Made by a program: the position numbers and the translations under genes. Positions 26,944 to 48,674 of a stretch of DNA of 64,000 nt are shown here, piece by piece. The notes under the pieces were generated by a model. That model had not been told where the DNA came from. It saw nothing but the letters and a program-made list of their open reading frames with translations, and did no database searches. Position 1 is the first letter of the stretch; every line of letters begins with the position of its first letter. The stretch is taken from the IMG/VR virus record IMGVR_UViG_3300032242_002041, positions 164,287 to 228,286 of that record; one strand, 5' to 3'.

Positions 26944-27655
26944 CTTTAATCCAGTCGTCGGGAACTACACCGTGTTTTTCAACAAACAGCTCGTGCAGTT
27001 TTTTTGGAGTAATTTTGTATTTTTTGGCTATAGACTTCATCATGTGATCTATAGCATCGTAGCTGTAGGGATGGCGAAGATCTTTTTCAAGATCATCAAC
27101 ACTGCCTTCTTTTAATGGAATAACCTTGACATCTTTATCATACCGTTTCCAAGGTGTAAAGTTTTTGTTAGTTCTAATCGTATCAAAGTCAGCAACATAT
27201 ACACCGCCTGACTTGTTCCAGTCAGCACCGCCAACAAATTTCATGGACACACGGTCTCCTAACTTGTGCATGTCAGGGATTTGTATAGCCACATTCATAA
27301 CAAAGTTTTTATTGTTAGTTAAATCAGCATAACGGCTAGCTAGTTCGTTAGGAATATCAATAGTAACTGTATAGTTTTGTCGTAAGAAGTGCTGGGCCAA
27401 TTGCCTATATCTCTTTAATACCTGCGCCTGATTACTACTGTGATTTAACGCATAGGTAACTTCTAAATAAATGTGACGGCATTTGAATTGTTCGGCTATA
27501 GATTGAATGGTGTCAATGTCTTTGAACTGGTTGACAATCAAAGTTTTTTTGCCGTAGGCAGCAGTCCTCTCAACTTCAGGACCGATGATATAATCGGGTC
27601 TATTGCCGGTTGGATGCACATTTTTTGTGCTGGTAGTAAAGTCACTGGCTCTCAT
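26930..27655 (-). CDS. putative virion internal protein carrying a paralogue of 16927..17442
   Basis: MRASDF leader; GPEVERTAAYGKKTLIV..HIYL..GVY..FTPWKRYDKD; LKE boundary. Confidence 0.7.
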   Translation of the reverse strand: MRASDFTTSTKNVHPTGNRPDYIIGPEVERTAAYGKKTLIVNQFKDIDTIQSIAEQFKCRHIYLEVTYALNHSSNQAQVLKRYRQLAQHFLRQNYTVTIDIPNELASRYADLTNNKNFVMNVAIQIPDMHKLGDRVSMKFVGGADWNKSGGVYVADFDTIRTNKNFTPWKRYDKDVKVIPLKEGSVDDLEKDLRHPYSYDAIDHMMKSIAKKYKITPKKLHELFVEKHGVVPDDWIKDAHK

Positions 27656-30600
27656 TCAACACCAAGGATCTGTTGAACCTGATTGACATAAGCACTAACA
27701 TCACTGGTGCCAATTTCGTCTACGTCACCTACATTGTATGCCACTTCCTCAATGGCCTGTGTGACTTTATCTAGCCCAAATTCCATTATCAAATCAGTGT
27801 GCGCCACTAGGATACGCCTGATAATGGCGATCTCAACGGCTTCGCTACTGGTTGAATTTTCGTCCTCGACCAAGTCTTGTTCAAGTCGATTGATCAGTTT
27901 GGAAACTGTTGTTTCAAAGGACTGTATGCTGGGTTTACCCAATCGAGCCTGCTCAATGGCAGCTTCTTCGCTATCGCCACGTCGTGTGATGCTGACCATT
28001 CGAGTTTGAGGATTGTAATAGACCACATAGCCGCGGATCACACTTTTCTGTGGAATAGTAGTACCGGGCATTTCAAATTCTTCTGTGACTTTGTCCTCAA
28101 ATGGCAAATACCAGAACCAGTTTTGGAAACCACCTGGGTTGGTATCATAGTCCATATGCGCACGATTACGAGCACCAGCCATCATACGTTTGAACTCATT
28201 TTCTGCGCCATGTAGTTCAGCAATGTTTTCTAGCTCGTCGTACAGTTGACCAGCAAGAAAACTGTCCCTGTGACGTTCAATTTTAGGAGCCAGGCGGCGA
28301 TAAACTCTAGCCATTTCTGCTCGAACATCTGTAACAGTTTCGGCTACGCCTTGCTTGCGCTCGTAGTCACGAATGATGTCAGCCCGCATATTAGGATTAC
28401 GTTCAATAGCCCGTAGCACTGCCTCGGGATAACGTGCAGGTTGTTTTGCTTTAACTGCTATGTGAGCATCTGGCATGTCATTCCATTCACCATCATCATA
28501 ATCATCACTTTCGTTCTTGGGTTTGACATGATGTTTTTTCATGTTGATTGCAATAGCAGCCTGCTGTGCGGCATTGGCGGCTTCCTCAAAGTCATCTCGA
28601 GGATTCATGACAACCGAACGAGATTGAGGTTGATTAACTGATTTTGCTGTCGGAGATTGATTAATGGTTTGAGCTTGTGAGCCGGCCGCATTTCTATGAC
28701 CAATTGCACCAATAATACTATTAACATCATTACTGCCCTGCATACCGGCTGTATTTTGTAATATTTTCCATACCGCTTGTTTATTACTTGCGTTACCTAG
28801 TGCTGACATTAAATCATTTTGATTTTGAATTTTACCAGACTGAATTTGTTGTATAACAGCGGTAGGATTGACTACACTAGGACCACTGCTTTGTGCCTGA
28901 GCCGCACCGGCGCCGCCCAAGGCCATGGCACCTGCTAGGGCTGCACCACCTAATGCTGATTTCCAGCCTTCATCCAGATCAATATCAGCCGGAGCAACCC
29001 ATACTGTATCGTGAGTCCATTTTGTTGGATCTTTCTTGCGCATGGCGGCCACATAGGCTTCAGCTTCTCTAGTATTCATGGGTTTGCCAATCTTATTTGT
29101 GGATTTGATACGCTTGACTTGACCGTTTTGTTTGGTATACACCGCATAGTGGTCACGTAGTCCTGCGGCCCCACTTCCACCCCAATTGCCTTCCTTGACT
29201 GGTGTGTCTTGTTGAGGTGCTGGTTTTAGCAGTGTGCGATACTGTTGTTGAAATGCCGCTTTGCTCATACCATATGCAGTATAAAACTGGCGCTCATTCA
29301 TATGTTCTACGTCTTGACGCATGATATCTATATCACTCAAACTGTCGCTTTCATCTAACTCGTCGTACCAATCATCTTCTTCTTGTTTGTCAGCATACTG
29401 GTTGTATTCAACATCACTCAGGTGCATGCTGTGTTTACCGTGATTGTACAAGTCGACAATAACAAATGTTCCACTTGGACTGAGTTCATAGATCTCGCCA
29501 GTCTTGCCTTCAAATTCGTTGGGTGCTGTAACAATGATAGGATCACCCGGGTGTAATCGGTTAGCAGATTCGTCAATGTTTAATAAATCAAATTCATCTT
29601 CTGGATTAGGAACTGGTAGTGTCTGAGATTTAATCTGAGGAGCGGCAGGCTTGGCCTTAGGTTTAGATTTGGATTTGGAAGGTGCAACATCTAAATCACT
29701 AAACGGAGCCTGCACACGCGGAGTCTGTTGTTTTTTGGTCGTGGTCAAATTATCCTGATCTATGTTTAATGCCTGTGCGGCCTGTGCCGGCAGTGAGTTT
29801 ATTTGAGTTCGTAATTTTGCTATTTCGGCCTTGACATTATCTGATGGTGGCTGTTGTTGTAATTGATTAATTTGCATTTTAAGATCTTGTAGTTCTTTTT
29901 CAACTCCTGGATCTGCACCAGGCGCAATGATTGTTGTGGGCTCTGGGGTTATTGTCTGTGGTGTTGTCTTGGCTGCTTGTTTAGGACGTGTGGACTGTTT
30001 TGCTCCAGTCATTGATTGGATGGTGTTTTGTAAACGATCGTTAGTAGCTTGTATGCGAGCTAACTGAGCTTCAAGACTATTATTTTCAGAATCTAACCCG
30101 TCAATCTCACGCCCTTGCTCTTGGTCAAGTGATACTAATTTTTTTAAGAGTTCGTCTTGTTTAGTGTTAGCACCCTGAATAGCAGCCAACTGTTGATCAC
30201 TACGTTTTTGATGGTCCAATTCATCTTTGGCCAAAGCTGCCATAGCATTAGGAGCTGCAGGGTGCTTGGCTTGTATTTTTCTTACAGCGTTGGTGGTTTC
30301 GGCGTCGCCAAAGTTTGGATCTTCAGAATTTTTTTTTTGAGCTCGTTCTGAGACTGGGCTTATCTTAGGTTCAGCATACCCTGTCAATTTGGGCTGGAAA
30401 GGATCTGCGGGTTGTTTTAACTGTGGACGAGTGGTTACTTTTTTCTGCCCACCTAACCATAAGGCAAAATTATTACGATCAGCTAATGTTTGTAGTGCAA
30501 ATTGATTACGAGTTTGGCGGCTCATATTTTTTAATTTTAATAAAGTATGATATATTTGATTACGTGACATAGTAATTGGTTCAGGACTGTTCATCCAGCG

Positions 30601-31137
30601 GATAGTTGCAATATCAACATTGTCGTCATGTGCTTTACGCATTTGTTCGTAGGCATATTTGGCAGCAGCTACAGGAGAAATTGCGGCTGTTTGTTCTTTA
30701 ACTGTGGACTCGTATGTAGGACCAGTGTCGTCTCGACCTGCTAACCAATCAACAAAACTAGAAAAAGTCGATTTAGCTTTTCCTAACGCAGTATTGCTTG
30801 GAGGAGTAGCACCGGTTACACGTTGTTGCGGAGTAACTAAATCTGTACCAGCACGAACAGGTTGGGCGGGTGCTGGAACTTGGTCAGCTTCACCTAAGCT
30901 ACCATAGCCCATGCACTCATCTTTAATCTTGTAATAGCCGTCGCGCTCAGTTTTGCACTTTTGAAATTCTTTAACCAATGCCGCCTTAGATTCTGGAGTA
31001 GTAGCTGTTTTAGCACGAGCAACCAAGTCATCCATCTTCATAGCTAAATCGTCAATGCGACGTTGTTCTAATTGGTCAACAGCACCTTCTGCAAGGCGTC
31101 GTTCGTGATCTGTGTTAAATAGGTCTAATGCAAACAT
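27652..31137 (-). CDS. large modular putative internal virion polyprotein
   Basis: Many short modules between LxE/VxE/GVAE sites; coiled coil; KOW-like segment; internal hydrophobic helix. Confidence 0.75.
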   Translation of the reverse strand: MFALDLFNTDHERRLAEGAVDQLEQRRIDDLAMKMDDLVARAKTATTPESKAALVKEFQKCKTERDGYYKIKDECMGYGSLGEADQVPAPAQPVRAGTDLVTPQQRVTGATPPSNTALGKAKSTFSSFVDWLAGRDDTGPTYESTVKEQTAAISPVAAAKYAYEQMRKAHDDNVDIATIRWMNSPEPITMSRNQIYHTLLKLKNMSRQTRNQFALQTLADRNNFALWLGGQKKVTTRPQLKQPADPFQPKLTGYAEPKISPVSERAQKKNSEDPNFGDAETTNAVRKIQAKHPAAPNAMAALAKDELDHQKRSDQQLAAIQGANTKQDELLKKLVSLDQEQGREIDGLDSENNSLEAQLARIQATNDRLQNTIQSMTGAKQSTRPKQAAKTTPQTITPEPTTIIAPGADPGVEKELQDLKMQINQLQQQPPSDNVKAEIAKLRTQINSLPAQAAQALNIDQDNLTTTKKQQTPRVQAPFSDLDVAPSKSKSKPKAKPAAPQIKSQTLPVPNPEDEFDLLNIDESANRLHPGDPIIVTAPNEFEGKTGEIYELSPSGTFVIVDLYNHGKHSMHLSDVEYNQYADKQEEDDWYDELDESDSLSDIDIMRQDVEHMNERQFYTAYGMSKAAFQQQYRTLLKPAPQQDTPVKEGNWGGSGAAGLRDHYAVYTKQNGQVKRIKSTNKIGKPMNTREAEAYVAAMRKKDPTKWTHDTVWVAPADIDLDEGWKSALGGAALAGAMALGGAGAAQAQSSGPSVVNPTAVIQQIQSGKIQNQNDLMSALGNASNKQAVWKILQNTAGMQGSNDVNSIIGAIGHRNAAGSQAQTINQSPTAKSVNQPQSRSVVMNPRDDFEEAANAAQQAAIAINMKKHHVKPKNESDDYDDGEWNDMPDAHIAVKAKQPARYPEAVLRAIERNPNMRADIIRDYERKQGVAETVTDVRAEMARVYRRLAPKIERHRDSFLAGQLYDELENIAELHGAENEFKRMMAGARNRAHMDYDTNPGGFQNWFWYLPFEDKVTEEFEMPGTTIPQKSVIRGYVVYYNPQTRMVSITRRGDSEEAAIEQARLGKPSIQSFETTVSKLINRLEQDLVEDENSTSSEAVEIAIIRRILVAHTDLIMEFGLDKVTQAIEEVAYNVGDVDEIGTSDVSAYVNQVQQILGVE

Positions 31138-31963: not shown

Positions 31964-32404
31964 TCATGCCCTTGCTTCTTTTAAACTAGAACGTAATTGC
32001 CAAGCAAACTTATTGGTTTGACTTAAACGTTCAGCAATAAAATTTGCTATGTCTTGTTTGTTTTCTTTGGTGGCAGCTGCAAAACATTGGTTTAATAACC
32101 CAACCATCTCTTCGCTATTGGCCAACAATTCTTCAATCATTAATCGGGCACGGGGCACTTTGAGTTGCCCGGGGATTACGCTTAGTTCTAGGAAACGTTC
32201 CATACTACCTGGGGAATATTCTTGTAGACTGCGAATGTATTCGGCTGTGGGATCTATGGCACTATAGGCATCTTCATAGATCTTTTGGAAAAACTTATGA
32301 TATTGATAAAAGTCTGGCGATTCAATATTCCAGTGGAAAGCATGTGCTTTTACATAATAGGCAAATTGAGTTCCTAACAAGGTTTTTAACAAATCAGCTA
32401 ACAT
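31964..32404 (-). CDS. dps: Dps/ferritin-like DNA starvation protection protein
   Basis: HAFHWNI..PDFYQYH..F..IYE, D..AEYIR, K.AWQL. Confidence 0.88.
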   Translation of the reverse strand: MLADLLKTLLGTQFAYYVKAHAFHWNIESPDFYQYHKFFQKIYEDAYSAIDPTAEYIRSLQEYSPGSMERFLELSVIPGQLKVPRARLMIEELLANSEEMVGLLNQCFAAATKENKQDIANFIAERLSQTNKFAWQLRSSLKEARA

Positions 32405-32919: not shown

Positions 32920-33654
32920 TTATATTGATAGATATCTTATAATCAAAACGCCAGGCTGAGCCGATAATCGATTACAATAGTTAGACTCGGCTAGATCGTA
33001 GCCGCCGCCAGCGCCATAGCTGGTATATCCTGTGCCATTAAGGCCAATACCGCCTGGGCCCTTGCCACTGCCGCCGCCGGCATAATAAACCATGTTACCA
33101 GTGATATCACTAGGTATACCTACACCACCACGTCCGCCAACTCCATCTAGAGTGCCCTGTCCGCCAGAGCCAGCAGCGCCACCCCCGCCACCTGGACCAA
33201 ACGGTGGATATCCACCACCAGCTGGAGCACCGCCGGCATAGCCTTGTCCGGGTATGCCAGCACCGCCTACAAAGTTTTGAAAATTGATATGTGTGACACC
33301 CAAGGTTCCGCCACCGCCGCCGGATCCACCACTAAAGCCATTGCCATAAAATCCACCCTGCCCGCCACCGTTGGCTGTCATGTTTAAGAAACTGCTGTTG
33401 TTGCCCGGATCACCAACAATTACTGGATATGATCCTGTGTTAATTGTAACGTTGCCTGTGAGTACTCCACCTGCACCACCACCGGCTACATAGGTACTCT
33501 GTGGCAGAGCTGCATTGCCGCCGCCGGCTACAAGCAAGTATTGGACGTCTGCAAGTGTACCACCCGACACAGTTAAACTACCATTGGCCTCAAAGGTTAC
33601 GACAGTATAATCACCGTCGGTGGTGACTGTACCAGTGGATGTTACCACGGTCAT
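32920..33654 (-). CDS. glycine-rich structural protein (tail/fibre-associated type)
   Basis: YLLVAGGG, GGGAGG repeats, GVLIIRY terminus. Confidence 0.75.
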   Translation of the reverse strand: MTVVTSTGTVTTDGDYTVVTFEANGSLTVSGGTLADVQYLLVAGGGNAALPQSTYVAGGGAGGVLTGNVTINTGSYPVIVGDPGNNSSFLNMTANGGGQGGFYGNGFSGGSGGGGGTLGVTHINFQNFVGGAGIPGQGYAGGAPAGGGYPPFGPGGGGGAAGSGGQGTLDGVGGRGGVGIPSDITGNMVYYAGGGSGKGPGGIGLNGTGYTSYGAGGGYDLAESNYCNRLSAQPGVLIIRYLSI

Positions 33655-33863
33655 CGAACTTCCTTTACACTGCCAATATGCCAGAGTGGCACACCATACT
33701 GTGCTTGCATTAGTTGACGGGCCAGTTGTGCGTTGGGCGCAGTCACAGTTACATCAATATAGCCTACATAATTAGGTTGAGTAATCTTAACCGGCGCTGT
33801 CCATAGCTTGGCAGCCACGGCTGTGTTTTGTTTTACGGCTTCCGATATTTCGTAGAATCTCAT
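33651..33863 (-). CDS. small putative internal virion protein
   Basis: MRFYEISE leader; ATGA overlap with the upstream stop. Confidence 0.6.
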   Translation of the reverse strand: MRFYEISEAVKQNTAVAAKLWTAPVKITQPNYVGYIDVTVTAPNAQLARQLMQAQYGVPLWHIGSVKEVR

Positions 33864-34693
33864 TGTCCTGTCCACTTGGCTATCATAGTTGCTTGACTGG
33901 TATAAATGCCAGTGCCTCTTCGTCCGCTACGCATACTACTGCTACCAGGTTTTACTGGAAATGTATATCTAGTCCAATCCGCCGTTTGATCAACGACCTG
34001 GTCACCGCGTTGTGGCCGGTATTCATCAGTGGGCGTCATGTTGTAACCTAGGACTTCAACTCCTGGAATACTATTTAACATTAGCCACATCTGTTGTCCG
34101 TGACGGGTTTGTGTTTCGCCAGCTTCTACTGTGAGCTTTAATATGCTTAAGGCAATGCCATACAAGGCTTTGCCAAGCCCCTGTCCACGAAAATCAGGAT
34201 CAACCACTACAGTATCAACTTTCCAAGTTTTCATGTAGTCCTGAGTATAATACAAATCCATTTCGGCAGCTAATATTTGGCCATCAAAGATCATAATTTC
34301 TATATTTTCAGCATCGGGTTGATTAACAGCATAGTCAAACTTACTACCGCCTGGCAGGGGTTTTGTTTTGGGCGGAGTTTTAGGATCGGCCAAGGTGCCT
34401 TTTTTGCCCCAGTCACCTAGTTCACTTTTTGGCAAGCGGGCTATCTCAAATAATTCTGGATCAAAGTCATCAGCACTGATAAAATGTGTAGTGCCATCAC
34501 GATGTTGTAGTTGCACAGCATCATCCTCTGATTCAACTTGATGTATGCTCCAACCAAGACTGTTTAGTACATGTTCAATCTGTGGTTGTCGGTCCGTGGC
34601 GTTCCACCAACGATTGGCCAGAACAAAAATAGGATCTGGAACATCATCATTGTTGTCACGCTCAGGACTGGGAGCAAATTCTCTTAATCTCAT
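33860..34693 (-). CDS. GNAT acetyltransferase-domain protein
   Basis: VVVDPDFRGQGLGKALY acetyl-CoA motif; MRLREF leader; LFE boundary. Confidence 0.8.
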   Translation of the reverse strand: MRLREFAPSPERDNNDDVPDPIFVLANRWWNATDRQPQIEHVLNSLGWSIHQVESEDDAVQLQHRDGTTHFISADDFDPELFEIARLPKSELGDWGKKGTLADPKTPPKTKPLPGGSKFDYAVNQPDAENIEIMIFDGQILAAEMDLYYTQDYMKTWKVDTVVVDPDFRGQGLGKALYGIALSILKLTVEAGETQTRHGQQMWLMLNSIPGVEVLGYNMTPTDEYRPQRGDQVVDQTADWTRYTFPVKPGSSSMRSGRRGTGIYTSQATMIAKWTGQ

Positions 34694-35169
34694 AGGTATC
34701 CTACCCAGGCTGGTCCTGCGTATCCTTGTGGAAATGCCTTTAATGCTTGTGTGGTTCTATGTCCACCTTCAACCAACGCATAGCCGTCGGGCATTTTTAT
34801 AACAATGATGGGTTCTCCACTGACCCCTTGTTGTTGTATCTTGGCGGCTTGTGCGGCATGCCGTTCGGCATCTCTGGGCACCTGATTGGGATTTTTAGAG
34901 CCGCCTTCTCTTTTACGAATTTGTTCCTGTGTAGCAGGTGTAAAGATGTCCATGGTAATAGGCAATTTTTCTAAACGCCATTGCCGGATTGGATATTCCT
35001 GTAACAAATGCTGTATGTGGGCTTTTTTATCTTCAAGTTCCATGTTATCAGGAATACGACCATACAACCAATCTTTGACCACATAGTCAGGCCAGTGTTT
35101 AGGCACCATGCTGCGTATTAAACGCCATGCTCCGCCTTGATATTCAAACAAAAATTCTTCAGCTCTCAT
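34690..35169 (-). CDS. ParB/Srx-like domain protein
   Basis: EPIIV...YALVEGGHRT; MRAEEFLFE leader. Confidence 0.7.
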   Translation of the reverse strand: MRAEEFLFEYQGGAWRLIRSMVPKHWPDYVVKDWLYGRIPDNMELEDKKAHIQHLLQEYPIRQWRLEKLPITMDIFTPATQEQIRKREGGSKNPNQVPRDAERHAAQAAKIQQQGVSGEPIIVIKMPDGYALVEGGHRTTQALKAFPQGYAGPAWVGYL

Positions 35170-36249
35170 TTAGCAGTTCCAACGACGGCGTGCCTTGCAG
35201 ATAGCTTTGTCAGGAGTTTTTGCACAGCTAATATTGTGCATCTTCATTTGACCACGACTGCGTGAGCAGTAGCTCTTGCGACGCTTGCTGGCTTTGCTAC
35301 CTTTTTTGAGCTTGGAAGGTTTAGTAGTCACAGCAGTTTGTAGTTTGCTACCAGGATGCTCACGGCGATATGTTTTGACGGCTTTCTTACTCATGCCATC
35401 TGTGCGGTCTCGATTGTTGACCTTCTGCCAGGCTTCGGTTTCCATAATAGTTGTTGTGGTTGCAAACACATACAGTTCATCATCGTCCAAGCTCTCTAGG
35501 TCTTCCCAGATCACTTCGCTATCTACGCCATTACGCTCAGCAAGAGTTTCAATAATGTTTTCGATTAAGTCAAATTCTTCAGCCAGTTCTGTGTCTTCCG
35601 CCACACCTTGCTGTCTTTGGACAGGGCTGTCTCTAAGTGCATCTCGATAAAACTCTTTGAAATCTTGTGCCAATTCTCTTGCTGACCACGCCCAAGTTTG
35701 ACGGTCCCAATCGTCTGTCATCTCAGCTTCAAGTTTAGCACCTGGTGCTCGACCACGACTAAACCCTATACGAACAGTATGTTCAATTTGTTTATTAACC
35801 AACTTTGCAAATAGTTTGCCATTGGGATTTGGATTAATTGTTACTTTATATCCGTGTCGTTCGGCAAACTGTATCGTTGGCTGTAAGAACTGGATTTTAG
35901 GATCAACAACACCAGCTTGAGGCGGAACAGCTTCCGCCACACTCTCGTTAGGCACACAGTTACGCACCTGGCCGCCATTCCGGCCTTTCTTTGTACCTTC
36001 GGCATGTTTGCCAGGCCAGCAACGAGTATAGCCATTGGCATCTTTAGCACCCTTCTTGATTTCATTGAGATTGCCATGTGTTTGACACATGCCACAGTCT
36101 TCACAGACCATTTCCATTTCTGTGCTTTCATTGTGCTTTTTCTTACCAGCACAATGAGCTCGTTGCGAGAAGCCCTTGGGGTGGCTACAGTTGATACTGC
36201 TCTTGTATTTTTGACTCCACTTTTCAGTGATAAATTCATAGGCTTTCAT
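35170..36249 (-). CDS. putative internal virion polyprotein of basic Cys-containing peptides
   Basis: MKAYEFITE leader; Lys/Cys-rich modules between xxE sites. Confidence 0.75.
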   Translation of the reverse strand: MKAYEFITEKWSQKYKSSINCSHPKGFSQRAHCAGKKKHNESTEMEMVCEDCGMCQTHGNLNEIKKGAKDANGYTRCWPGKHAEGTKKGRNGGQVRNCVPNESVAEAVPPQAGVVDPKIQFLQPTIQFAERHGYKVTINPNPNGKLFAKLVNKQIEHTVRIGFSRGRAPGAKLEAEMTDDWDRQTWAWSARELAQDFKEFYRDALRDSPVQRQQGVAEDTELAEEFDLIENIIETLAERNGVDSEVIWEDLESLDDDELYVFATTTTIMETEAWQKVNNRDRTDGMSKKAVKTYRREHPGSKLQTAVTTKPSKLKKGSKASKRRKSYCSRSRGQMKMHNISCAKTPDKAICKARRRWNC

Positions 36250-39200
36250 TCTTTGTGTTTCCTTTTCTGTCCTCTACGCATATTTAACTGCCAACGTGCC
36301 AGTTGTCCTTTACGACCTTTGGCATGACTCGCTTTTTCTAATTCAGCCATTGTAGCACCTTTGGGGATGCCGTGACGAACGCTATCGCCTGGACGACCAG
36401 GTCCTTTGCCGTCGGCAAAATTTTCTTGTAATCCTCTGACTGACATATTGTGTCCAGTGCTACGTTCTAGTTCGTTGGCACGAGCATCAGCCTGCGACCA
36501 AGGCACGTTATCCATTCTGCTGATCTCGCGTCCTAAGGTAACATCGTATATTGCCCAAGTGCCTACTCTATTGGTAGCATCCGCGGGTTGGTCAAAGTTC
36601 TGTGCCACATCTGGCTCAACATCCTTGACTGCTGTTTCTTGCTTGCGTGGTCTATAACCATAGTCGTGAGTGTCGTTTGGCAAACCCTTCATTGTCAGCC
36701 ATTTATCAAACGTTGCATCTGCTTCTTGTTTGTCAGCGGCATAGAACCGGTCCACTACACGTAGATTTACATCGCCAAGATTTACAATTTCGTAGTTGTA
36801 GTCTGTGGGCTTTTTGGTTTGAGTAATGCGCTTGGCTAACTTGGCACGTGGTGTCATAGTTGCTGGATCTTCCCAAGGGCGAACCTGGAAGCCAATGCCT
36901 TGATCCACATACTTGTCGTAGACCTGATCAGCCACTTCGCCTTTGCTCTTGCCCTTGACTATTTCCAGCGTCTTGCCAGTGTTGACATCATACACTTCCC
37001 AGTCTTGCTCACCCATGTTGACCAGCTGATATTCACCAGAGTCCAAGGCTTCACGACCATACTTGGCCCATACTCGGTTTTTAACTTCACTTTCGGGGTA
37101 ACCATTCCACTCGGCACCAGGAACTGGTTCCCACCGACCGTTGACGTTTTGATACAGTCTAAAACGCTGATTCATTTTCTTTTCTTTACCGATGGTCTTT
37201 TCGGCCCATTGTTTCTTGAGTTGTTCTGCGGTGAGTTCACCCGCGGCATATTGACTGAACAGAGCTAGTTCACTGTCGCCTTCGGGCGCTACTAACTTGT
37301 ACAACTTCTTGGCATACTCTCTGCGTTCTTCAGCAGGGTTAGCCGCCAAACTCATAGCACGGGCAAAACGCAACATGGTTGTTTGTAATTTTTCCGGATC
37401 AGCTGACTCTTCTGCTAACCAATCACCACCTGGCGATCTAAATTCAATATAGCCTTTTTGTATGTGGGCACTGGTGTACTTGCCATCGCCTACCCCTTTT
37501 TGTATTTCTTTGTGTGCTAGTTCAATCAAGCCACTCTGCATGAGTTTGATCGCACCCATAGGATCAGCACGACCGCCTTTGATGTTTTCACGGAACTTGC
37601 TCATGGCACTCTTGGTGTAGGTATTGGCTTCGCGACCAAATGACCGTAACACATACTCGTCACCCAAGAACAGGATTAATTTCAAGTAGTCAACATCGCC
37701 ACCTTTGAATGGCACACTAACGCCCATGTGCAGGCCAGTTGAGCTGTTGGTATAGGCATTACCTTCTTGAGGATTATTGGCCCAGTCACATACTTGTTGT
37801 AGTTTTTCTAATGCTGTCAACAGGGGCATAGGAGGACTTACAATTTCCAACCCAAAATCTTCACGATCATCGGGTTCTAAACTGGTATCAGGTTCTACAA
37901 TAAACTGTCCTTCTCGGCGAGTAGCTTGGTGATAACCGCTACTTACTTTAACCGGCATGTCAACGGCACTGTTCAAACTGTCACCAATTTCATCCCAATC
38001 ACGACTTCCGTCATTGCCACCGCCACCGGTCATGTAAGGCCAGTCTAAGTCATATGAATTGGCCACATCACTCATCCAGCGTAGACCCACATCATCAAAG
38101 AATCCTGAATCGTCATCAATTTGATAATTGTCGCGGAAATCATCCAGTGCGGCATCCCAGTTGGCACCTTCCTTACGTACTTCATCTGCTATTAAATCAT
38201 CCAACAAGCCTTCGGCTTCGTTTTGTGCATCCAGGTATTTGTCGTAAAGTGGGTTGGCTTCAGCATACAAGATCTGTTCTTTACTGCTTGTGAACTTAGG
38301 TGCCCGTTCGCCCGCTTGTATAATGTCATTCATTTCATCGTCGGTTAAATCCAACAACTCCAACTGTTTTTGTATTTCGTTGTCAAGATCCCAATCGCCT
38401 TCATCTACTAGAACTTTACGAATCAAGTCCTCGGCTTCTTCTCTAAAGTCTTTGTGCATTTGCTCGTCATACCACTCATAATACTGTTCGTCAAGTCCTT
38501 CTTGTAAGGCACGCTCTTGTCTAGGACTTAAATTTCCGTAGTCGCCACCACTAAAAAAGTCTATGATATCTTGGATGCTACGACAACGTTCGTCCTGATC
38601 ATAGTCAGGTTCCATTTCGTAGTCACTGTCGCCGTTGTTGCTGGTGTCACGGAAGATTAACTCTGCTTCAAACCCAGCACGTATACCCTGGGCTTCTGGA
38701 CTCCGTGCCCACTGCATTAGATTGCTTGGACTCATACGTACTTCGTCTAGTTGCTCAACTGATTCGGCTACCTTTGTTTTTTTGAACTGTGATAATTCTA
38801 AGGCTAATTTTTCAAACAGGCCATTAGGATTAGCAATCTGCGGTTGTCCTTGACTGTTGGTTTTTAATTTTAATTTGTTAGCTTCTTTGCCAACTTGACC
38901 TGGCTTGATATCTTGTGTAAGCGCCATTGAATAGCGTGGATCTCGGGCCTGTTTCCGTGTAGGGATGTATCCCGATGCTGACTCCTCTACACCTTGCTTG
39001 GCACGTTGCTTGGCACGTTTGGCACGTTGTAAGTAGTATTTTTTTAATTCTAAATCTTTTGGTGTAGCAGTTCTGATCAGATCTAAATGTTGATCCACTG
39101 GAACTTTTTCAACTTCTATTGGTTTAAGTTCGGTTACGCTGGGCACGGAAGTAAACTCTCTGTCATTGCCGCCGGGCTCAAACAAAGGACGACCATTGGC

Positions 39201-40652
39201 ATCATACCTTGGTAACTTGTGTAGGTAAACCATTTGACCGTGTCTAATTTTGCCGCTGAATAAAACCAATTGCGGATCATTGGGAAATCCAGCAGTATCA
39301 GACCCTCGTTCTGTAAGGCCCATTGCTATAGCAAAATTTTTGTCGGCTGTGGCATAAATGGCTTTTTTATTACTCTTAGGATTGCCGCCGGTGTCTTCTG
39401 CCTGTTGTGGCGTCAGTACTGGAATCTCGTTTCTAGATCCGTGCCATAGATATTCTTGTGACGCACTTTCTTTAACTTCATCAGCGTGTAAGCCTTGGGC
39501 TTGCCCTACAGCAAAGTAGTCCGGGTGTAGTCTAGCATAGTCGCGCATTAAGATACCAGCACGGGCATTGGCTTCATTTTCCCATGGTGATCCTGTTTCT
39601 CCAGCTGTTGGTCCCATACGTTGACCATCGCGTTCGTGTTGATGCTTGTGTGTAAGTTCGTGTGCCACAGTGCGCAACACATCCATGATGTGACGATGGC
39701 CCCAGGCTACTTCAAGCAAGTGTTGATTGTTGATGTAACGGCCAAAAGTTTTGTTACGCACAGACCATTCAGGATCTTTGCGTAATTTAATTGTGGGCAT
39801 CTGCTTGAGTTTTAATTCTTTAAAACAAAAGTCAATAAAATCTTTTAGTATCTCTTCGTCTGAGGGAACAGGGTCTGGTTCCGTTACGGCTTCAACTATC
39901 TCTGGAGTTCGAAATCCATACTTTACAGGAGTCTTAACTACAGTTTTTTCTTTTAAACTGAGTTCCTGATCTTTGGCTGCGTTACGAGCATCATATAATT
40001 CTTTAATCTTGCCTTGACTACGTAACATTTTAAATGCCAAATTTTCTGGTCCAAATTCGCCGTGTTGTTCAAGTCCAGTTTGGCGCATCTTTTTAATCTT
40101 TTCAGCCATACAGGTCATCTGTTTTAAGTTGCCTGATTTGATAGCACGTTCAATTTGGTGCCCTACTGACTCAAATTTGTTTCGAGTGCTGGTATCGTCT
40201 ACCACTGACTTGACACGACGCGGAACTTGAATCCAGTCATTGTTTAAGATACTGTAAATGCCTTGACTAATATGCGGAGCATCGGCATCTTGAACATATA
40301 GTTCAACATCGTATCCACCAATTGTAATATTGTGTTGTTCGTTATACTGAAACTTTTTAGCATCAAACAGTTCACGATAAACTTCGTTATCGGGCATTTT
40401 AACTACTAGGTGTAGATCGATGTCTGAATTGGGTGTGTATGTGTAAGCGGCATTGCTACCACTAATAGTTATGTCTTTGAGGTCAAGGTCTGTAACGCCC
40501 AGAAACTCGCGAAAATCTTCAGCTATTAACAATAGCTGTGCTTTAACTTCTGGCTTTAAATGCTCAGTAGAATCCCATAATCTAGGATTTAATCGATTAT
40601 TAAATTTGACGGCATCGTCAAGGTTATAGGCGTCTAATTCAAGAATATTCAT
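36246..40652 (-). CDS. multi-enzyme polyprotein: Pol-beta nucleotidyltransferase + HExxH metallopeptidase + ADP-ribosyltransferase-like + amidoligase
   Basis: GSNAAY..SDIDLH; AHELTH..WENEA; WHGS..IYAT..E; GFEAE..DTSL..EIVSP..TGLHM..IEFR; start 40652 just after TAAATA. Confidence 0.8.
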   Translation of the reverse strand: MNILELDAYNLDDAVKFNNRLNPRLWDSTEHLKPEVKAQLLLIAEDFREFLGVTDLDLKDITISGSNAAYTYTPNSDIDLHLVVKMPDNEVYRELFDAKKFQYNEQHNITIGGYDVELYVQDADAPHISQGIYSILNNDWIQVPRRVKSVVDDTSTRNKFESVGHQIERAIKSGNLKQMTCMAEKIKKMRQTGLEQHGEFGPENLAFKMLRSQGKIKELYDARNAAKDQELSLKEKTVVKTPVKYGFRTPEIVEAVTEPDPVPSDEEILKDFIDFCFKELKLKQMPTIKLRKDPEWSVRNKTFGRYINNQHLLEVAWGHRHIMDVLRTVAHELTHKHQHERDGQRMGPTAGETGSPWENEANARAGILMRDYARLHPDYFAVGQAQGLHADEVKESASQEYLWHGSRNEIPVLTPQQAEDTGGNPKSNKKAIYATADKNFAIAMGLTERGSDTAGFPNDPQLVLFSGKIRHGQMVYLHKLPRYDANGRPLFEPGGNDREFTSVPSVTELKPIEVEKVPVDQHLDLIRTATPKDLELKKYYLQRAKRAKQRAKQGVEESASGYIPTRKQARDPRYSMALTQDIKPGQVGKEANKLKLKTNSQGQPQIANPNGLFEKLALELSQFKKTKVAESVEQLDEVRMSPSNLMQWARSPEAQGIRAGFEAELIFRDTSNNGDSDYEMEPDYDQDERCRSIQDIIDFFSGGDYGNLSPRQERALQEGLDEQYYEWYDEQMHKDFREEAEDLIRKVLVDEGDWDLDNEIQKQLELLDLTDDEMNDIIQAGERAPKFTSSKEQILYAEANPLYDKYLDAQNEAEGLLDDLIADEVRKEGANWDAALDDFRDNYQIDDDSGFFDDVGLRWMSDVANSYDLDWPYMTGGGGNDGSRDWDEIGDSLNSAVDMPVKVSSGYHQATRREGQFIVEPDTSLEPDDREDFGLEIVSPPMPLLTALEKLQQVCDWANNPQEGNAYTNSSTGLHMGVSVPFKGGDVDYLKLILFLGDEYVLRSFGREANTYTKSAMSKFRENIKGGRADPMGAIKLMQSGLIELAHKEIQKGVGDGKYTSAHIQKGYIEFRSPGGDWLAEESADPEKLQTTMLRFARAMSLAANPAEERREYAKKLYKLVAPEGDSELALFSQYAAGELTAEQLKKQWAEKTIGKEKKMNQRFRLYQNVNGRWEPVPGAEWNGYPESEVKNRVWAKYGREALDSGEYQLVNMGEQDWEVYDVNTGKTLEIVKGKSKGEVADQVYDKYVDQGIGFQVRPWEDPATMTPRAKLAKRITQTKKPTDYNYEIVNLGDVNLRVVDRFYAADKQEADATFDKWLTMKGLPNDTHDYGYRPRKQETAVKDVEPDVAQNFDQPADATNRVGTWAIYDVTLGREISRMDNVPWSQADARANELERSTGHNMSVRGLQENFADGKGPGRPGDSVRHGIPKGATMAELEKASHAKGRKGQLARWQLNMRRGQKRKHKE

Positions 40653-40669
40653 GATAGTATTTACCGGGC

Positions 40670-40696
40670 AAACAAAAGCCGCTTTGATAGCGGCTT
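40670..40696 (-). terminator. rho-independent terminator
   Basis: AAGCCGCT/AGCGGCTT stem followed by a U-rich tract on the minus strand. Confidence 0.7.
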
Positions 40697-40718
40697 GTGT
40701 CATTTAAACAAAAACAGT

Positions 40719-41621
40719 TTATTTTTTCTTTTTCTTGCTGGATGATGCCAGTACTTTAGCTTCAACCGGCTTGGGTGCTACATCAACAGGTGCAGCAACA
40801 CCTGTAGGACCACCTAGTGCTACATTATTGTTTAATGCCAGAGTATGCAGATCTTTGTAGAGTTGATCTTGTGTTTGAAAGTCAAATACATAGGTTCCTG
40901 TGTGCTTGAGTAGGACACGCTTGTCAACCCACACTTTACCTCCTAGATCACGCCAGTTTTCACAGAAAGTCCAGTCTTCGCTATAGTAGCGGTTCTCACG
41001 AACTGCTGTATCAAAGTAGGTTTTCATAAACGGATTTAATTCAGGCGGCAGGCCAATGTCATTTAAAAACGGCTTGGTAGCAGGATGAGCATTGAGTTTT
41101 TCAAATACATCACGTTTGATCAACATAAATCCTGTGCCAGTTTTGCTAACTTCTTGCAGACCATCTGGGCCTTCTTCGGCTCCTTCAAAACCATTGACAC
41201 ACCACTTGACTGGCAGGCTTTTCATTGGGTATAAACCACCAATAACGTCCACGTCACGATTTAACATGACCAGCAGGTGCCATGGCTCCCAACCAATGTC
41301 AGCATCAATAAACATCAGGTGTGTGGATTCTTTGTTGTACAGGAACTTGGCTGTGAGTGTGTTACGAGCACGGCTAATCAATGACTCATTGGTCATGGTT
41401 TCCATGGTCCAATCAATGCCCAATTGACGGCAAGTATTGGCCCATTTGATATAGCTCATAAAACAACTTTCTGTTAGCATACCACCATAGCAGGGCATAC
41501 AAATATGAACTCGAGTAGTTTTTAAATAATCAACGTTAACTTGAATTTGTTGTTGTCCTGGCTGTAGGGCCGGCGCTTGTGGTGTTTCTGTTGTTGGTAC
41601 TGCGTCTTTGGTTTCAGCCAT
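40719..41621 (-). CDS. GT-A fold glycosyltransferase-like protein
   Basis: PCYGG, ESLISRARN, THLMFIDADI, GTGFMLIKR, SEDWTFC. Confidence 0.75.
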   Translation of the reverse strand: MAETKDAVPTTETPQAPALQPGQQQIQVNVDYLKTTRVHICMPCYGGMLTESCFMSYIKWANTCRQLGIDWTMETMTNESLISRARNTLTAKFLYNKESTHLMFIDADIGWEPWHLLVMLNRDVDVIGGLYPMKSLPVKWCVNGFEGAEEGPDGLQEVSKTGTGFMLIKRDVFEKLNAHPATKPFLNDIGLPPELNPFMKTYFDTAVRENRYYSEDWTFCENWRDLGGKVWVDKRVLLKHTGTYVFDFQTQDQLYKDLHTLALNNNVALGGPTGVAAPVDVAPKPVEAKVLASSSKKKKK

Positions 41622-41671
41622 GATTTCCTCTAGTAAAGTGTCTGATATTTACTAGAGTTTAACACACCTGG

Positions 41672-42484: not shown

Positions 42485-42500
42485 TGTAACATATTTATGG

Positions 42501-43468: not shown

Positions 43469-44179
43469 TTATTTAGTCGGGATTATCTGCATAGTTTTTC
43501 TTATAAGGCCAGGGCGAACTAAACCGAGCATGGTTAACCACAGCATTTCGTTGTGATCAACAAAAAAGTAATCTTGGGTCCTATTAAACGGCCCTACTAT
43601 CCATGCGTTGAGCGCAGGGCTTACCCTAACAGTCTGTTGATTTAATAAAAATCCCGTTAGATGAGTCTTTTGTTCCGCGGTCAATTTGACTATTTTAAAA
43701 TAACTACGAAATTGGTGTTGAGGGTTTTTTAGTTGTATAGTATTTGGAGGACGATTAATATCTGCTCGACTGTAACTGTTACTTTCTACTCCATTGAGTT
43801 GATCTACCCGATCAATTAAAGTTAAATCGTTGGTGTAAAGGTATCCTTGGTTGGCACTTACTACTAGTTTAAAATCTACAGGTGCAGTTAACAACAGCGT
43901 TGCCAAGGTGTGTAAGTTATCAACCGTTTGGTCGGTAATTTCTTTTCTTCGCTGTCCTAGTATATGTTGACGGCCTAATACTTGTCCGGTCTTGTGCCAT
44001 CGTTGCATGGCTATGCTACGCCACTCTCGGCGACGTTCAATCGTTCGATCAATTTCGTCATGACCAAGGTCGCGCAAAGCACTGGCTTCATCCATTGTGA
44101 AACTTAGCACGTATTCAAATCGATTATGAAACAATCGATCTTTGACAACCGATTTAAATTGTTGGATCGCTTTGGTCAA
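43469..44179 (-). CDS. hypothetical protein
   Basis: 236-aa ORF downstream of clpA. Confidence 0.7.
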   Translation of the reverse strand: MTKAIQQFKSVVKDRLFHNRFEYVLSFTMDEASALRDLGHDEIDRTIERRREWRSIAMQRWHKTGQVLGRQHILGQRRKEITDQTVDNLHTLATLLLTAPVDFKLVVSANQGYLYTNDLTLIDRVDQLNGVESNSYSRADINRPPNTIQLKNPQHQFRSYFKIVKLTAEQKTHLTGFLLNQQTVRVSPALNAWIVGPFNRTQDYFFVDHNEMLWLTMLGLVRPGLIRKTMQIIPTK

Positions 44180-46430
44180 GAACTATATATCCATTTTCAT
44201 CGACTACAGGAGCCAGCATAGGAGGCTCGATTATAAAATCAATTCGATCATCAACCATGATAGCTGAAATATTGCAGTTTTCTAATCGATCAAACAAGAT
44301 CTTCTTACTCAACGGCACACGAATTAACTCGTCAATCTTACGACCTAAGGGACGAGCACCCATCTTATTGTCATAGCCCTTATCGGCTAACATATCAATA
44401 ACAGATTCCGTTAAGTTTAGCTTAATGTTCTTGTTCATTAGGCTATCTTTAAGTTCATCTACAAATTTAACAACAACTTTCTTGATAGCCAAGGTATCTA
44501 ACTTGTTAAACTTGCACACACAGTCGATACGATTGCGTAGCTCAGGCTTGAAGAACTCTTTCATGGCTTTGTCTTCACTACCGGTCTTTTCTAATGCCTG
44601 ACCGAAGCCAATGTTGTTTGACTCGTTATCACGAGCACCCAAGTTTGATGTCATGATAATGATGCAGTTCTTAAGATCTACTGTTTTACCATTGCTCGAT
44701 GTAATACGAGCTTCGTCTAACATTTGTAACATAATGTTAACAACGTCGGGGTGAGCCTTTTCAATTTCGTCAAACAACAAGATACTAAATGGATTCTTAC
44801 TAACATCACTAATTAACTTGCCGCCGCCTAGGTTACCATCTTCAAAGCCTACGTAGCCTGGAGGCGCACCAATCAAGCCCGAAACTGTATGACGTTCTTG
44901 ATACTCACTCATATCGTATTTTAACAACTTCATATCTAAGTGTTCGCCTAGCAACTTGGCTAGTTCTGTTTTGCCTGTGCCTGTTGGTCCAAGGAATAAA
45001 AAGCTGGCAATAGGACGTTTGTTGTTGCCAATGCCGGAGAAATTAATGTAGACACGTTCTAAGACACGATCTACAGCCGCATCTTGTCCGTAGAGCTTTT
45101 GTTTGATGTTACTTTCCAGTTCAACAATCTTGGTTGAACGTTCGTTTTCAAGTCGATCTAAGGGAACATCAGTTACCCGACTTAGTTGTTCCATAATCAT
45201 TTCTTTGGTAATGGTTACATTGCCCAAGTCCTTGACACGTTCCTTAGCACAAGCACCGTCCAACAGATCAATTGACTTGTCTGGATTCTTACGATCATGA
45301 ATGTAACGGCCACTTAATTCAACTGCGGCTGTAATAGCATCAGTATCAATCATGACATTATGAAACTGTTCCAAACGTGGGCTAAGTCCAATAAGAATCT
45401 GTTCTGTTGTTTCTGCATTGGGCTCATCGATGCTCACACGATGGAAGCGACGCATTAAGGCGCGGTCTTTTTCAAACGACTCGTAGTATTCTTCCCAAGT
45501 AGTACTAGCAATTACTTTTAAACTGCCCTTGGTAATACTTGGCTTTAACATGTTGGCCATGTCCAAGCTACTTTGACTGCTGGCACCAGCACCTTTCATG
45601 GTATGCGCTTCATCAACAAACAAGATACAATTCTTTTTAGTTTCTAGAGCAGTAATAACTGCTTTGAACTTTTCTTCAAACTCACCGCGATACTTTGATC
45701 CAGCTAGTAATGAGCCCACTTCCAATGACCATAGTTCGTGTCCTTTAAGGAATTCTGGTACATGACCAGCGGTCATTTCCTGTGCTAGTCCTTCTACAAT
45801 AGCAGTCTTGCCTACACCGGGGTCGCCAACCATTAACACGTTGGCCTTGAACTTGCGAGCCAACACAGTAATCATTTCATCGAGCTCTGCACTACGGCCA
45901 ATCATGGGTTCAAGACGATCTTCACGGGCTAGCTTGGTAAGCTCAACACAGTGTTCTGTTAATATTTCTGTGGCCTGTTGATCCGTGAGCTTGACATCAC
46001 TTTGTTTGTAATGAGCGTTGTAAAATTCTACAAATTCAGTTTTCTTCATACCATACTTGAGTAGGAAGTAATGAGCGTGACTGTTGTTCTCAGCCATCAT
46101 GGCCAAGTATAAATCTACAGTACTAATAGTTCTGCGACCAGTAAACAAGACCTGAGTCAGTGCGCGATTAAACACACGTTCTAGAGCATTGGTTTTTTTA
46201 GGTTGCACATCTTTGTCAGTGACTAGTGCTGCCAAATTATTTAGATAGGTGTTTAATTCCATATCTAGCAAATTTACGTCAACACCAAATTTTTCCATGA
46301 CACGATGAAAAGGTTCGTGTCTAATTAGGCTCAATAGTACATGTTCAGTTAATACGTATTCGTGATGGCGATCACGTGCTAATTTAACTGCACCGTCAAC
46401 TATTTGTTCAATTTCTGGATTATTTTGCAT
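44154..46430 (-). CDS. clpA: ATP-dependent Clp protease ATP-binding subunit
   Basis: Clp N-domain, GDPGVGKT and GPTGTGKT Walker A motifs, no M-domain, IGF loop. Confidence 0.92.
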   Translation of the reverse strand: MQNNPEIEQIVDGAVKLARDRHHEYVLTEHVLLSLIRHEPFHRVMEKFGVDVNLLDMELNTYLNNLAALVTDKDVQPKKTNALERVFNRALTQVLFTGRRTISTVDLYLAMMAENNSHAHYFLLKYGMKKTEFVEFYNAHYKQSDVKLTDQQATEILTEHCVELTKLAREDRLEPMIGRSAELDEMITVLARKFKANVLMVGDPGVGKTAIVEGLAQEMTAGHVPEFLKGHELWSLEVGSLLAGSKYRGEFEEKFKAVITALETKKNCILFVDEAHTMKGAGASSQSSLDMANMLKPSITKGSLKVIASTTWEEYYESFEKDRALMRRFHRVSIDEPNAETTEQILIGLSPRLEQFHNVMIDTDAITAAVELSGRYIHDRKNPDKSIDLLDGACAKERVKDLGNVTITKEMIMEQLSRVTDVPLDRLENERSTKIVELESNIKQKLYGQDAAVDRVLERVYINFSGIGNNKRPIASFLFLGPTGTGKTELAKLLGEHLDMKLLKYDMSEYQERHTVSGLIGAPPGYVGFEDGNLGGGKLISDVSKNPFSILLFDEIEKAHPDVVNIMLQMLDEARITSSNGKTVDLKNCIIIMTSNLGARDNESNNIGFGQALEKTGSEDKAMKEFFKPELRNRIDCVCKFNKLDTLAIKKVVVKFVDELKDSLMNKNIKLNLTESVIDMLADKGYDNKMGARPLGRKIDELIRVPLSKKILFDRLENCNISAIMVDDRIDFIIEPPMLAPVVDENGYIVLDQSDPTI

Positions 46431-47700: not shown

Positions 47701-48330
47701 TTATAGTGCTGGGAATGATTGTGCAGGTCCCAAGGGTTTACCTGTGTTTGGGCAAGCTGGCGCTGGTGTCCCAAATGCAGGTGCTGGTGTGGAGCCAAAT
47801 GCAGGTGCTGGTGTGGAGCCAAATGCAGGTGCTGGCGCGGATCCATATGCTGGTGTTGCACTGCCGTAACCTCCTGTTGCAGGTGCGCCATATGCTGGTG
47901 CTCCGCCCATTGTTTGCGATCCATATCCATTATTAAATCCTCCACCCATATTGTTATTCATACCACCCATTGCACCGCCTGGAGGAACATACTGTGTACC
48001 TGCTCCTGGTCCAAATCCTTGACTTAATCCGCCATTCTCTGCTCCAGCCATTTTTTCTTTAGTACGGCCATATGCGGCAATACCTAATACAGCACCCATG
48101 GCAATATGGAAAAGTCCAGCACCTTGTAAGGTCAAGGGTTGCCATTGGCTATTAACTTGTCCGTGGTTAATTGCTTGATGTAGACTCCATAGTACCGGAA
48201 ACAACATAAAGTCGCAGGCACAGACAGCCATGTACATCCAACCCATCATTGGACGCCATTTGGCATTCATCCAATCTTCTTTTTTCTTTTCACTATCCGT
48301 AGAGTGATTGTATTCACTTAACTGTGACAT
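47701..48330 (-). CDS. putative holin (GTA 3TM-holin-like) with repetitive Gly/Pro tail
   Basis: WRPMMGWMY, TM helices, LGIAAYGRTKEK; in lysis cassette. Confidence 0.7.
   Translation of the reverse strand: MSQLSEYNHSTDSEKKKEDWMNAKWRPMMGWMYMAVCACDFMLFPVLWSLHQAINHGQVNSQWQPLTLQGAGLFHIAMGAVLGIAAYGRTKEKMAGAENGGLSQGFGPGAGTQYVPPGGAMGGMNNNMGGGFNNGYGSQTMGGAPAYGAPATGGYGSATPAYGSAPAPAFGSTPAPAFGSTPAPAFGTPAPACPNTGKPLGPAQSFPAL
47760..47860. repeat. 24-bp tandem repeat encoding (GSTPAPAF)n
   Basis: gcaggtgctggtgtggagccaaat repeated, with degenerate flanking copies. Confidence 0.85.
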
Positions 48331-48379
48331 ACCTGCTCCTTTTTATTATTATTATTATATTTACTACAAAACTACTTTA

Positions 48380-48664
48380 TTACTTTGCTTCGTCTACGTT
48401 TCCTGCGTGATAATTGGCCAATGCTTCCGCTTCTTTAGCGGCTTCAATTAAGGCGGCTGTTTCGGCCTGTGCTTTGGTTGCAGCGGCCAATGCAGCTAAA
48501 TGTGCGGCCTTGCTAAACTTGGCGGCACGCTGTTTGGCATCTGCCAAGGCACGTTCCGCGGCCGCAACATCATCAATTGCTTCTGTGGACAACTTTTTAG
48601 CATTGGTAAATGCTTCTTTTAACTTGCCCGCTACTGTTTGTTCTAATCGAGTAAACCAACCCAT
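48380..48664 (-). CDS. Ala-rich coiled-coil protein
   Basis: SD AAGGAG before ATG 48664. Confidence 0.65.
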   Translation of the reverse strand: MGWFTRLEQTVAGKLKEAFTNAKKLSTEAIDDVAAAERALADAKQRAAKFSKAAHLAALAAATKAQAETAALIEAAKEAEALANYHAGNVDEAK

Positions 48665-48674
48665 TTTATTCTCC

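Follow-up and report, generated by a model that had tools for sequence, protein, structure and literature searches.

The 64,000-nucleotide window analyzed here (positions 164,287 to 228,286 of IMG/VR virus record IMGVR_UViG_3300032242_002041) contains, on the minus strand at window positions 35170-36249, an open reading frame (ORF) of 359 amino acids (aa), as given by the ORF list and its translation, whose product is probably an internal protein of the type known from phage T4. Such a protein would be packaged into the phage head, processed at glutamate (Glu) sites, and co-injected with the DNA; judged from sequence comparison, the probability of this reading is put at roughly 60%. The parts of the proposal differ in strength: targeting to the head and removal of the leader are quite likely, the odds of further internal cuts are about even, and an association of the basic modules with DNA is a tentative suggestion that falls somewhat short of even odds, while the neutralization of the basic units by the acidic module, proposed in the first-pass annotation of this DNA, appears rather doubtful.

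The ORF was divided at conserved landmarks before net charge and cysteine (Cys) content were scored for each segment, and basic, Cys-paired segments were found to alternate with acidic ones. It begins with a leader, MKAYEFITE (residues 1-9; 36223-36249), which resembles a capsid-targeting sequence, has a net charge of -1 and no Cys, and ends in an I-T-E site. The leader is followed by unit 1 (residues 10-41; 36127-36222; KWSQKYK..C..PKGFSQ.AHCAGKKK), with a net charge of +7 and two Cys, by an acidic Cys knuckle of the form C-x2-C-x2-C-x2-H (residues 42-63; 36061-36126), with a net charge of -5, three Cys, and an L-N-E site at its end, and by unit 2 (residues 64-102; 35944-36060; ..CWPGKH..GTKKG....V.NCVPNE), with a net charge of +6 and two Cys. 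The remainder consists of a variable cargo domain (residues 103-218; 35596-35943; net +1, no Cys) with V-A-E sites at both bounds (SVAE at its start, GVAE at its end), an acidic helical module (residues 219-271; 35437-35595; net -17, no Cys) that reads EEFDLIE..VIWEDLESLDDDELYVFA..IME and holds six [LIVM]xE tripeptides, and the basic DUF6321 module (residues 272-359; 35173-35436; net +22), whose four Cys form two pairs; all of these segments lie on the minus strand. The PF19846 (DUF6321) profile scores 34.5 bits against a cut-off of 28.5 at residues 280-357, which is the sole Pfam match in the ORF, and the basic modules together amount to +35.

The peptides quoted in the first-pass annotation, which described a string of basic, Cys-paired peptides separated by Glu sites and acidic spacers, are all present exactly in this minus-strand ORF, and the alternation that it described is borne out by the segment charges and Cys counts and is conserved. 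Its layout overlooked the neutral central domain of 116 aa, and the supposed spacer, acidic as stated (-17), is itself a conserved helical module. The alternation is not a product of chance, given more than 7,000 homologues, near-invariant Cys residues, and the retention of positions P3 and P1 in the tripeptides that precede the units.

The Cys residues are conserved in a manner that bears on their role. In the knuckle, C49, C52, C55, and H58 are nearly invariant; units 1 and 2 each keep two Cys and one histidine (His), although His23 of unit 1 is asparagine in cyanophages; and in DUF6321 the first and last Cys are invariant, whereas the inner pair is gained or lost together. Such changes by pairs favor disulfide-type staples, or a pairwise ligation of metal between modules, for the Cys of DUF6321 and the units over classical four-ligand zinc fingers. 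A reading of the units as zinc knuckles or ribbons was considered and set aside, because four ligands per module are not kept; the sole segment with four candidates is the CxxCxxC..H knuckle. In the predicted structure of the full protein (mean predicted local distance difference test score, pLDDT, of 47), disorder is assigned to residues 1-64 and to most of 78-118, the acidic module forms helices at pLDDT 63-80, the highest in the protein, DUF6321 is helical at 50-60, and the cargo appears as a low-confidence alpha/beta domain. Folding as one domain, named in the first-pass annotation as an outcome that would speak against a precursor, is absent from this model, according to which the 359-aa protein is not one compact domain.

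Leader, Protease, and Glutamate Sites

In T4, the leader MKTYQEFIAE directs internal proteins to the core of the prohead, after which the protease gp21 cleaves it off (PMC8442874); within this leader, residues 4 and 7 chiefly govern targeting, and residues 8 and 10 processing (PMC9026906). The leader MKAYEFITE matches the T4 leader at seven of nine residues and retains Tyr4 and Phe, associated with targeting, as well as Ile and the terminal Glu, associated with processing. Across the family, the leader follows the consensus M-[KR]-x-x-[ED]-[FI]-[ILV]-[TA]-E, and a strict form of this pattern is present in 86 of 137 DUF6321-bearing representatives (63%) versus 3 of 219 ORFs of the genome (1.4%), two of these three being in the locus described here.

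The genome also supplies the corresponding machinery. The window forms the last 64 kb of a virus record of 228 kb, whose completeness is put at 66%, and an identical copy of the 359-aa protein was found on a 345-kb contig. The record encodes a prohead protease of the gp21 type (Peptidase_S77, PF03420; 86.9 bits; genome positions 48036-48686, minus strand) and the major capsid protein Gp23 (325.8 bits), with scaffold-like, acidic core-like, and portal genes between or beside the two, and a DNA polymerase of the T4 family is encoded in the window. Judged from these genes, the source is a jumbo T4-like phage, a type expected to possess a protease that cleaves hydrophobic-x-Glu tripeptides behind the Glu.

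Tripeptides of this kind mark the module boundaries. The ORF has eleven [LIVM]xE tripeptides, none of which falls within unit 1, unit 2, DUF6321, or the interior of the cargo; ten are at or near boundaries or in the acidic module (ITE-9, LNE-63, VAE-106, VAE-218, LAE-224, four more in the acidic module, and IME-270), and the eleventh, VCE-50, sits within the knuckle, where its Glu is not conserved. Among distinct sequence contexts of the homologues, [LIVMF]xE stands directly before unit 1 in 57 of 58 and before DUF6321 in 108 of 109, either directly or two residues upstream in a subtype that begins TE/SE-AWQK; before unit 2 it was scored in 31 of 41, with the Glu one residue farther upstream in the other ten, and before the acidic module in 114 of 130. 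Per position, the tripeptide has a background frequency of 1.3-2.9%. At these places the hydrophobic P3 and the Glu at P1 are kept and P2 is free (A, M, N, T, K, H, L, V, D, or G); ahead of unit 2, for example, [LVI]-x-E occurs with N, M, T, D, or L at P2. In T4, a change of the P1 Glu to Asp blocks cutting. Several proteins join the leader straight to DUF6321 (FITE|DWQK, ILNE|DWQK, and FIFE|TEAWQK), which makes the internal junction equivalent to the point of leader cleavage. Distant copies in cyanophages and cyanomyoviruses likewise have IVE, LSE, IGE, LEE, FHE, or LKE before DWQ, with TNE as one exception. In the only clear case examined of a phage that is not T4-like (61.5 kb), DUF6321 is a stand-alone gene of 94 aa, located between capsid/cement and adaptor genes, without leader or Glu site. 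The Glu sites proposed in the first-pass annotation are of the gp21 type, with [LIVM]xE before every module start and a fitting protease in the genome; the unit ends that it chose, HNE and PNE, do not conform, and its third boundary, ETE|A, is better read as IME|TE-AWQK. The boundary tripeptides were also considered as relics of leader-to-leader recombination, which is unlikely, as only x-Glu recurs internally and never M-K-x-x-E-F.

A further, independent line of evidence is provided by twin-arginine translocation (Tat) signals in relatives. A Tat signal peptide works only at the N-terminus of a protein. The pattern [DST]RRGFL[KR]G followed by an Ala-rich stretch was scored in 146 representatives and was found in 18, and in 16 of these the signal is internal (among the relatives concerned are P0123, P0129, P0137, P0160, P0164, P0180, P0201, P0211, P0218-P0220, P0226, P0228, P0241, and P0247). 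All 16 internal signals lie 0-3 residues after an [LVM]xE tripeptide, behind about six types of linker, and most have no preceding start codon; at least eight of the twin-arginine signals show a recognizable AxA motif, and the Pfam TAT_signal family was matched in nine proteins among 109 representatives scanned. Because such signals act at the N-terminus only, their internal placement after [LVM]xE is most simply read as a cut at the Glu site that creates a new N-terminus. The signals also suggest that the cargos bearing them would be meant for export by the host after injection, and that some may reach the periplasm. The 359-aa protein of the window has no Tat signal, so the Tat argument is evidence at the level of the family.

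Exchangeable Cargo and Reshuffled Modules

The more than 7,000 database proteins that match the ORF commonly share the order of leader, unit 1, CxxCxxC knuckle, unit 2, an insert of 0 to ~400 residues, acidic module, sometimes a second insert, and DUF6321. The constant parts of this chassis are typically ~80-95% identical, and the inserts are unrelated to one another. At the nucleotide level, similarity to syntenic loci covers 35152-35590 and ~35940-36250 with none between, and at the same place in related phages the cargo is absent or unrelated, one relative having no insert at all; a nucleotide search of the locus against cultured phages gave no match.

The cargo of the window protein (residues 103-218) matched no Pfam family and no known fold. 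A search of a structure atlas with the cargo returned unnamed clusters, with template-modeling scores of ~0.5-0.6 to unnamed clusters, an AcrVA2-like protein, YbjN, and other families, which are weak similarities and serve as leads only. In the Pfam scan of 109 representatives, most cargos had no family; the sporadic matches (ribosome modulation factor with E 3.7e-12, M48 and DUF6782 peptidases, nucleotidyltransferases, ParB_N, and helix-turn-helix domains) would fit injected effectors that manipulate the host.

The modules of the chassis are also found apart from it. A search with the DUF6321 part gave 2,350 clusters at 50% identity, of which 188 lie below 1e-30, so that nearly the same DUF6321 module is joined to otherwise dissimilar proteins; the acidic module stands before DUF6321 in most representatives. 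Module order and copy number vary, as in the arrangement leader-DUF6321-linker-unit 2 of P0231, and unit 2 is reshuffled in other proteins (P0231 and P0250), sometimes in two copies, and also in cyanophage proteins, while unit 1 occurs alone at the C-terminus of cyanophage proteins. T4-like cyanophages carry the units singly or in other combinations. Cultured phages with such modules include the Synechococcus phages S-SRM01, B23, MA01, S-B68, and DSL-LC02 and the Prochlorococcus phage P-TIM68. In all of the cyanomyovirus loci examined (L003, L004, L012-L014, L016, and L017), modules are located between the terminase genes: in six cyanomyoviruses a DUF6321 protein is encoded between the genes of the small and the large subunit, and in a seventh, S-SM2, a unit-1 protein is. 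This intersubunit region of cyanomyoviruses is a known hypervariable hot-spot (PMC3037559). Proteins of that region hold further modules of similar appearance (WFGKSKSK..GKPGWV..C..PKC and ACYHKVKSRY..VKCRK), and more basic, Cys-paired modules of like style occur in the reshuffled proteins, in the related phage locus L007, and in cyanophage proteins. The reshuffled occurrences for which the first-pass annotation had proposed a separate search with each unit were therefore found, and the units are independent modules in other phage proteins.

Sequence searches against solved structures, with the DUF6321 profile and with residues 1-103, returned nothing. In the literature searched, no paper was found that names DUF6321 and none on targeting leaders in cyanophages; the Pfam entry (PF19846) assigns no function, and its description, as far as found, holds neither the leader, the Glu site, the acidic partner, nor the neighborhood of head genes. 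The multi-module chassis, the repertoire of basic, Cys-paired modules that includes DUF6321, the protease-type sites at every boundary, and the Tat signals behind such sites appear to be undescribed as far as found.

Proposed Processing and Alternative Explanations

From the established architecture, site conservation, protease and scaffold genes, and module reshuffling, we infer packaging, cleavage, DNA binding, and injection along the following lines. By way of its leader, the protein would enter the scaffolding core of the prohead, and after closure of the shell the gp21-type protease would remove the leader and probably cut the other boundary [LIVM]-x-E sites after Glu. The acidic module, with six sites in 53 residues, would be chopped into small fragments that leave the head, as the fragments of the T4 scaffold do. 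Processing would yield a leader that is discarded, the free cargo, two or three Cys-paired peptides that are small and very basic, and small acidic fragments. The basic modules may remain with the packed DNA and exit with it at infection, and the freed cargo, which differs between related phages, would be injected and is probably a functional payload, or effector, acting in the host. A precursor that releases mini-proteins at Glu sites, as the first-pass annotation had it, is in keeping with the gp21-type sites, the protease, the leader, and the Tat placement; the cargo domain and the array of leader-bearing genes around the ORF had escaped it.

Several observations weigh against the proposal of a packaged and internally processed protein. 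The boundary tripeptides belong to conserved modules and may be inherited with them, so that the boundary counts are not independent; [LIVM]xE accounts for 23% of the Glu in variable cargos versus 26% genome-wide, and without a depletion nothing indicates that internal cutting is selected against. Two unit ends, HNE and PNE, misfit a T4-type site, T4 internal proteins are described as cut once only, beside the leader (PMC8442874), and no published packaging or cleavage data were found in the literature for any member of the family. The structure models are of low confidence. The ORF is distant from the cluster of head genes and has replication and metabolic genes as neighbors, and the exact T4 late promoter, TATAAATA, occurs three times in the window, which is not above chance, and never near the locus.

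The main competing explanation, distinctly less probable, accepts packaging and holds that only the leader is removed; the basic modules would remain on the cargo as DNA-binding handles, hold it in the condensed genome, and carry it out at ejection. It would agree with the single cut of T4 internal proteins, with the handle-like position of the N- and C-terminal modules on either side of the cargo in thousands of proteins, and with the undepleted [LIVM]xE of the cargos, by which the tripeptide alone need not mean cutting. However, a P3 and P1 kept at every module start with P2 free are hard to explain without a protease, the internal Tat signals behind the sites require a new N-terminus, and a second, C-terminal cut is made in the T4 protein Alt, which gp21 cleaves at ITE-6 and near the C-terminus at LTE-619 (PMC5694885).

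Much less probable is a cytoplasmic, non-virion protein that binds nucleic acid or acts in regulation through basic Cys/His mini-domains of the zinc-knuckle kind, with Glu tripeptides and an N-terminus that serve some other purpose. Metal could be bound by the C-x2-C-x2-C-x2-H knuckle and several conserved His, and the position of the gene among replication and metabolic genes, away from the head cluster, would suit such a role; yet no unit except the knuckle keeps four ligands, with His23 replaced by Asn and the DUF6321 Cys varying in pairs, the leader matches the targeting sequence of T4, and copies in other phages are located in head and packaging modules. A precursor of secreted, disulfide-rich peptides, similar to bacteriocins or ribosomal peptides and freed of its leader and acidic spacers by a dedicated protease, is highly improbable. 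Its resemblance to repeated Cys-paired peptides with acidic spacers is superficial, and a radical SAM protein is encoded elsewhere in the window (15429-16604, minus strand), but a signal peptide, a transporter, and a neighboring modification enzyme are all lacking, the units occur in fusion with large, unrelated domains in structural contexts of phages, and the leader is of the T4 head-targeting type.

The T4-type internal protein, packaged and cut at its Glu sites, remains the preferred reading, and it suggests that the T4 principle of internal-protein delivery is used very extensively by environmental T4-like phages, in which DUF6321 alone is carried by more than 2,000 clusters (50% identity). 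It provides a testable function for DUF6321 and several unnamed basic, Cys-paired modules; the leader, the modules, and the hydrophobic-x-Glu rule could be used to pick candidate injected effectors from metagenomes, some injected proteins may be routed onward to the host periplasm, and the leader or chassis could serve for packaging foreign proteins into T4-like heads other than those of coliphages. A broader extension is speculative and unlikely to hold in full, namely that the family is a universal cargo chassis of aquatic T4-like phages, in which a head-targeted polyprotein would be cut into disulfide-stapled, protamine-like, DNA-binding mini-proteins and a swappable effector, with a Tat signal unmasked in some members for re-export to the periplasm. 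If true, it would imply that the genome is coated in a maturation-dependent manner, by analogy with the cores of adenoviruses or retroviruses, and that phages deliver proteins by a new route.

Neighboring Genes and Comparison with Known Systems

The ORF is part of a coupled run on the minus strand that comprises 40719-41621, 36246-40703, the 359-aa ORF itself, 34690-35169, 33860-34693, and 33651-33875. Downstream of the ORF, and also on the minus strand, are a ParB-like protein of 159 aa that starts MRAEEFLFE (34690-35169), a GNAT-like acetyltransferase of 277 aa that starts MRLREF (33860-34693), and a 70-aa protein that starts MRFYEISE (33651-33863). The orthologues of these three leader-type genes differ in presence or length among related phages, and at the syntenic loci of two such phages (L007 and L009) most of the variable small genes start with the leader. 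The internal proteins of T-even phages are diverse, injected anti-restriction proteins that have only the leader in common and are encoded at variable loci; few have been studied, all from coliphages (PMC3012670, PMC12373910). The locus of the 359-aa ORF likewise holds a variable array in which the genes are linked by nothing but the leader.

Upstream, and translationally coupled to the ORF, lies a multidomain protein of 1485 aa with nucleotidyltransferase, HExxH-motif, and amidoligase-like parts (36246-40703, minus strand). Its true start is probably an internal Met at 40652 (MNILE..), and the L007 orthologue begins MNILELD. The C-terminus of this protein is a further basic module with L-Q-E in front, which occurs in L007 as a stand-alone, leader-bearing gene of 66 aa.

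With regard to expression, the relaxed motif RTAAATAT lies 5-35 nucleotides ahead of the start codon in the genes for the portal, the prohead-core protein, and a sheath-like protein, as well as in another leader-bearing gene, and is probably the late promoter of the source phage, a variant of the T4 promoter; its sites include position C1:4152 of the genome. A copy that resembles the T4 late promoter, GTAAATAT (41645-41652, minus strand), is located upstream of the gene that heads the coupled run, with a second copy at 42491-42498, and lends weak support to late expression of the run.

Additional observations concern genes farther away. Outside the window, leader-like starts were seen at C1:629-1021 (MRAREFIGE) and C1:3519-4127 (MKNFQQYLAE), both on the minus strand, the latter with a late-promoter-like motif just upstream. 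The minus strand of the window further encodes, at 27652-31137, a protein of 1161 aa without a PHROG match that starts MFALDLFN..AEGAVDQLEQRRIDDL; N-termini of this type are common to the long DUF6321 proteins P0166 and P0190 and to genes that occupy the corresponding position in L007 and L009, and proteins that bear them may represent a second head-targeted class. Also on this strand are a ferritin/Dps-like protein (31964-32404), recognized by orthology to Pfam-annotated genes of L007 and L009, and an AAA protein of 758 aa that resembles ClpB and ATP-dependent proteases (44154-46430).

Among known systems, the internal proteins of T4 are the closest, and every sequence-testable feature of those that bear a capsid-targeting sequence is found for the 359-aa protein, as far as sequence can tell: the leader, the gp21-type protease with its scaffold, and the variable array of leader-bearing genes. 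Both have a near-identical leader of ~10 residues that ends in hydrophobic-x-Glu, both are basic, and both belong to hypervariable arrays of leader-bearing genes with unrelated mature parts. In contrast, each T4 internal protein consists of one small domain and undergoes a single cut, whereas the protein described here has a multi-module chassis with a swappable cargo and boundary sites; its Cys-paired modules are common to thousands of environmental phage proteins, and no similarity extends beyond the leader. T4 Alt, an ejected ADP-ribosyltransferase effector, is processed by gp21 at both ends, and its ITE is the tripeptide that ends the leader here; however, Alt is one enzyme that loses two propeptides, whereas here the terminal basic modules are likely retained and the effector part varies. 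The inner-body or ejection proteins of phiKZ, 201phi2-1, and SPN3US are similar in that many are cut after Glu at several sites by a gp21-related protease and contain redundant propeptide sites (PMC5694885, PMC9026906), but their sites are S/A/G-x-E, the phages are not T4-like, and no shared modules were found.

Polyvalent proteins are recognized by several effector or enzymatic domains per polypeptide (Iyer et al. 2017), a trait that the 359-aa ORF lacks and that the 1485-aa neighbor, which resembles packaged effectors of this class, displays. Together with the Dar proteins of phage P1, they are capsid-delivered effector domains (ParB-like, metallopeptidase, and nucleotidyltransferase), which the 1485-aa neighbor and some cargos of the family fit; the 359-aa ORF differs from them in having one small, uncharacterized cargo and in relying on a T4-type leader and a prohead protease instead of MuF, portal, or DarA-type partners.

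In adenovirus, pVII and pre-mu, and in retroviruses, the nucleocapsid part of Gag, are small, basic, genome-binding peptides freed by a maturation protease in the virion, and those of retroviruses contain Cys knuckles. The resemblance to these cores is an analogy from general knowledge: there is no homology, the viruses are eukaryotic, their proteases are different, and their CCHC knuckles bind zinc.

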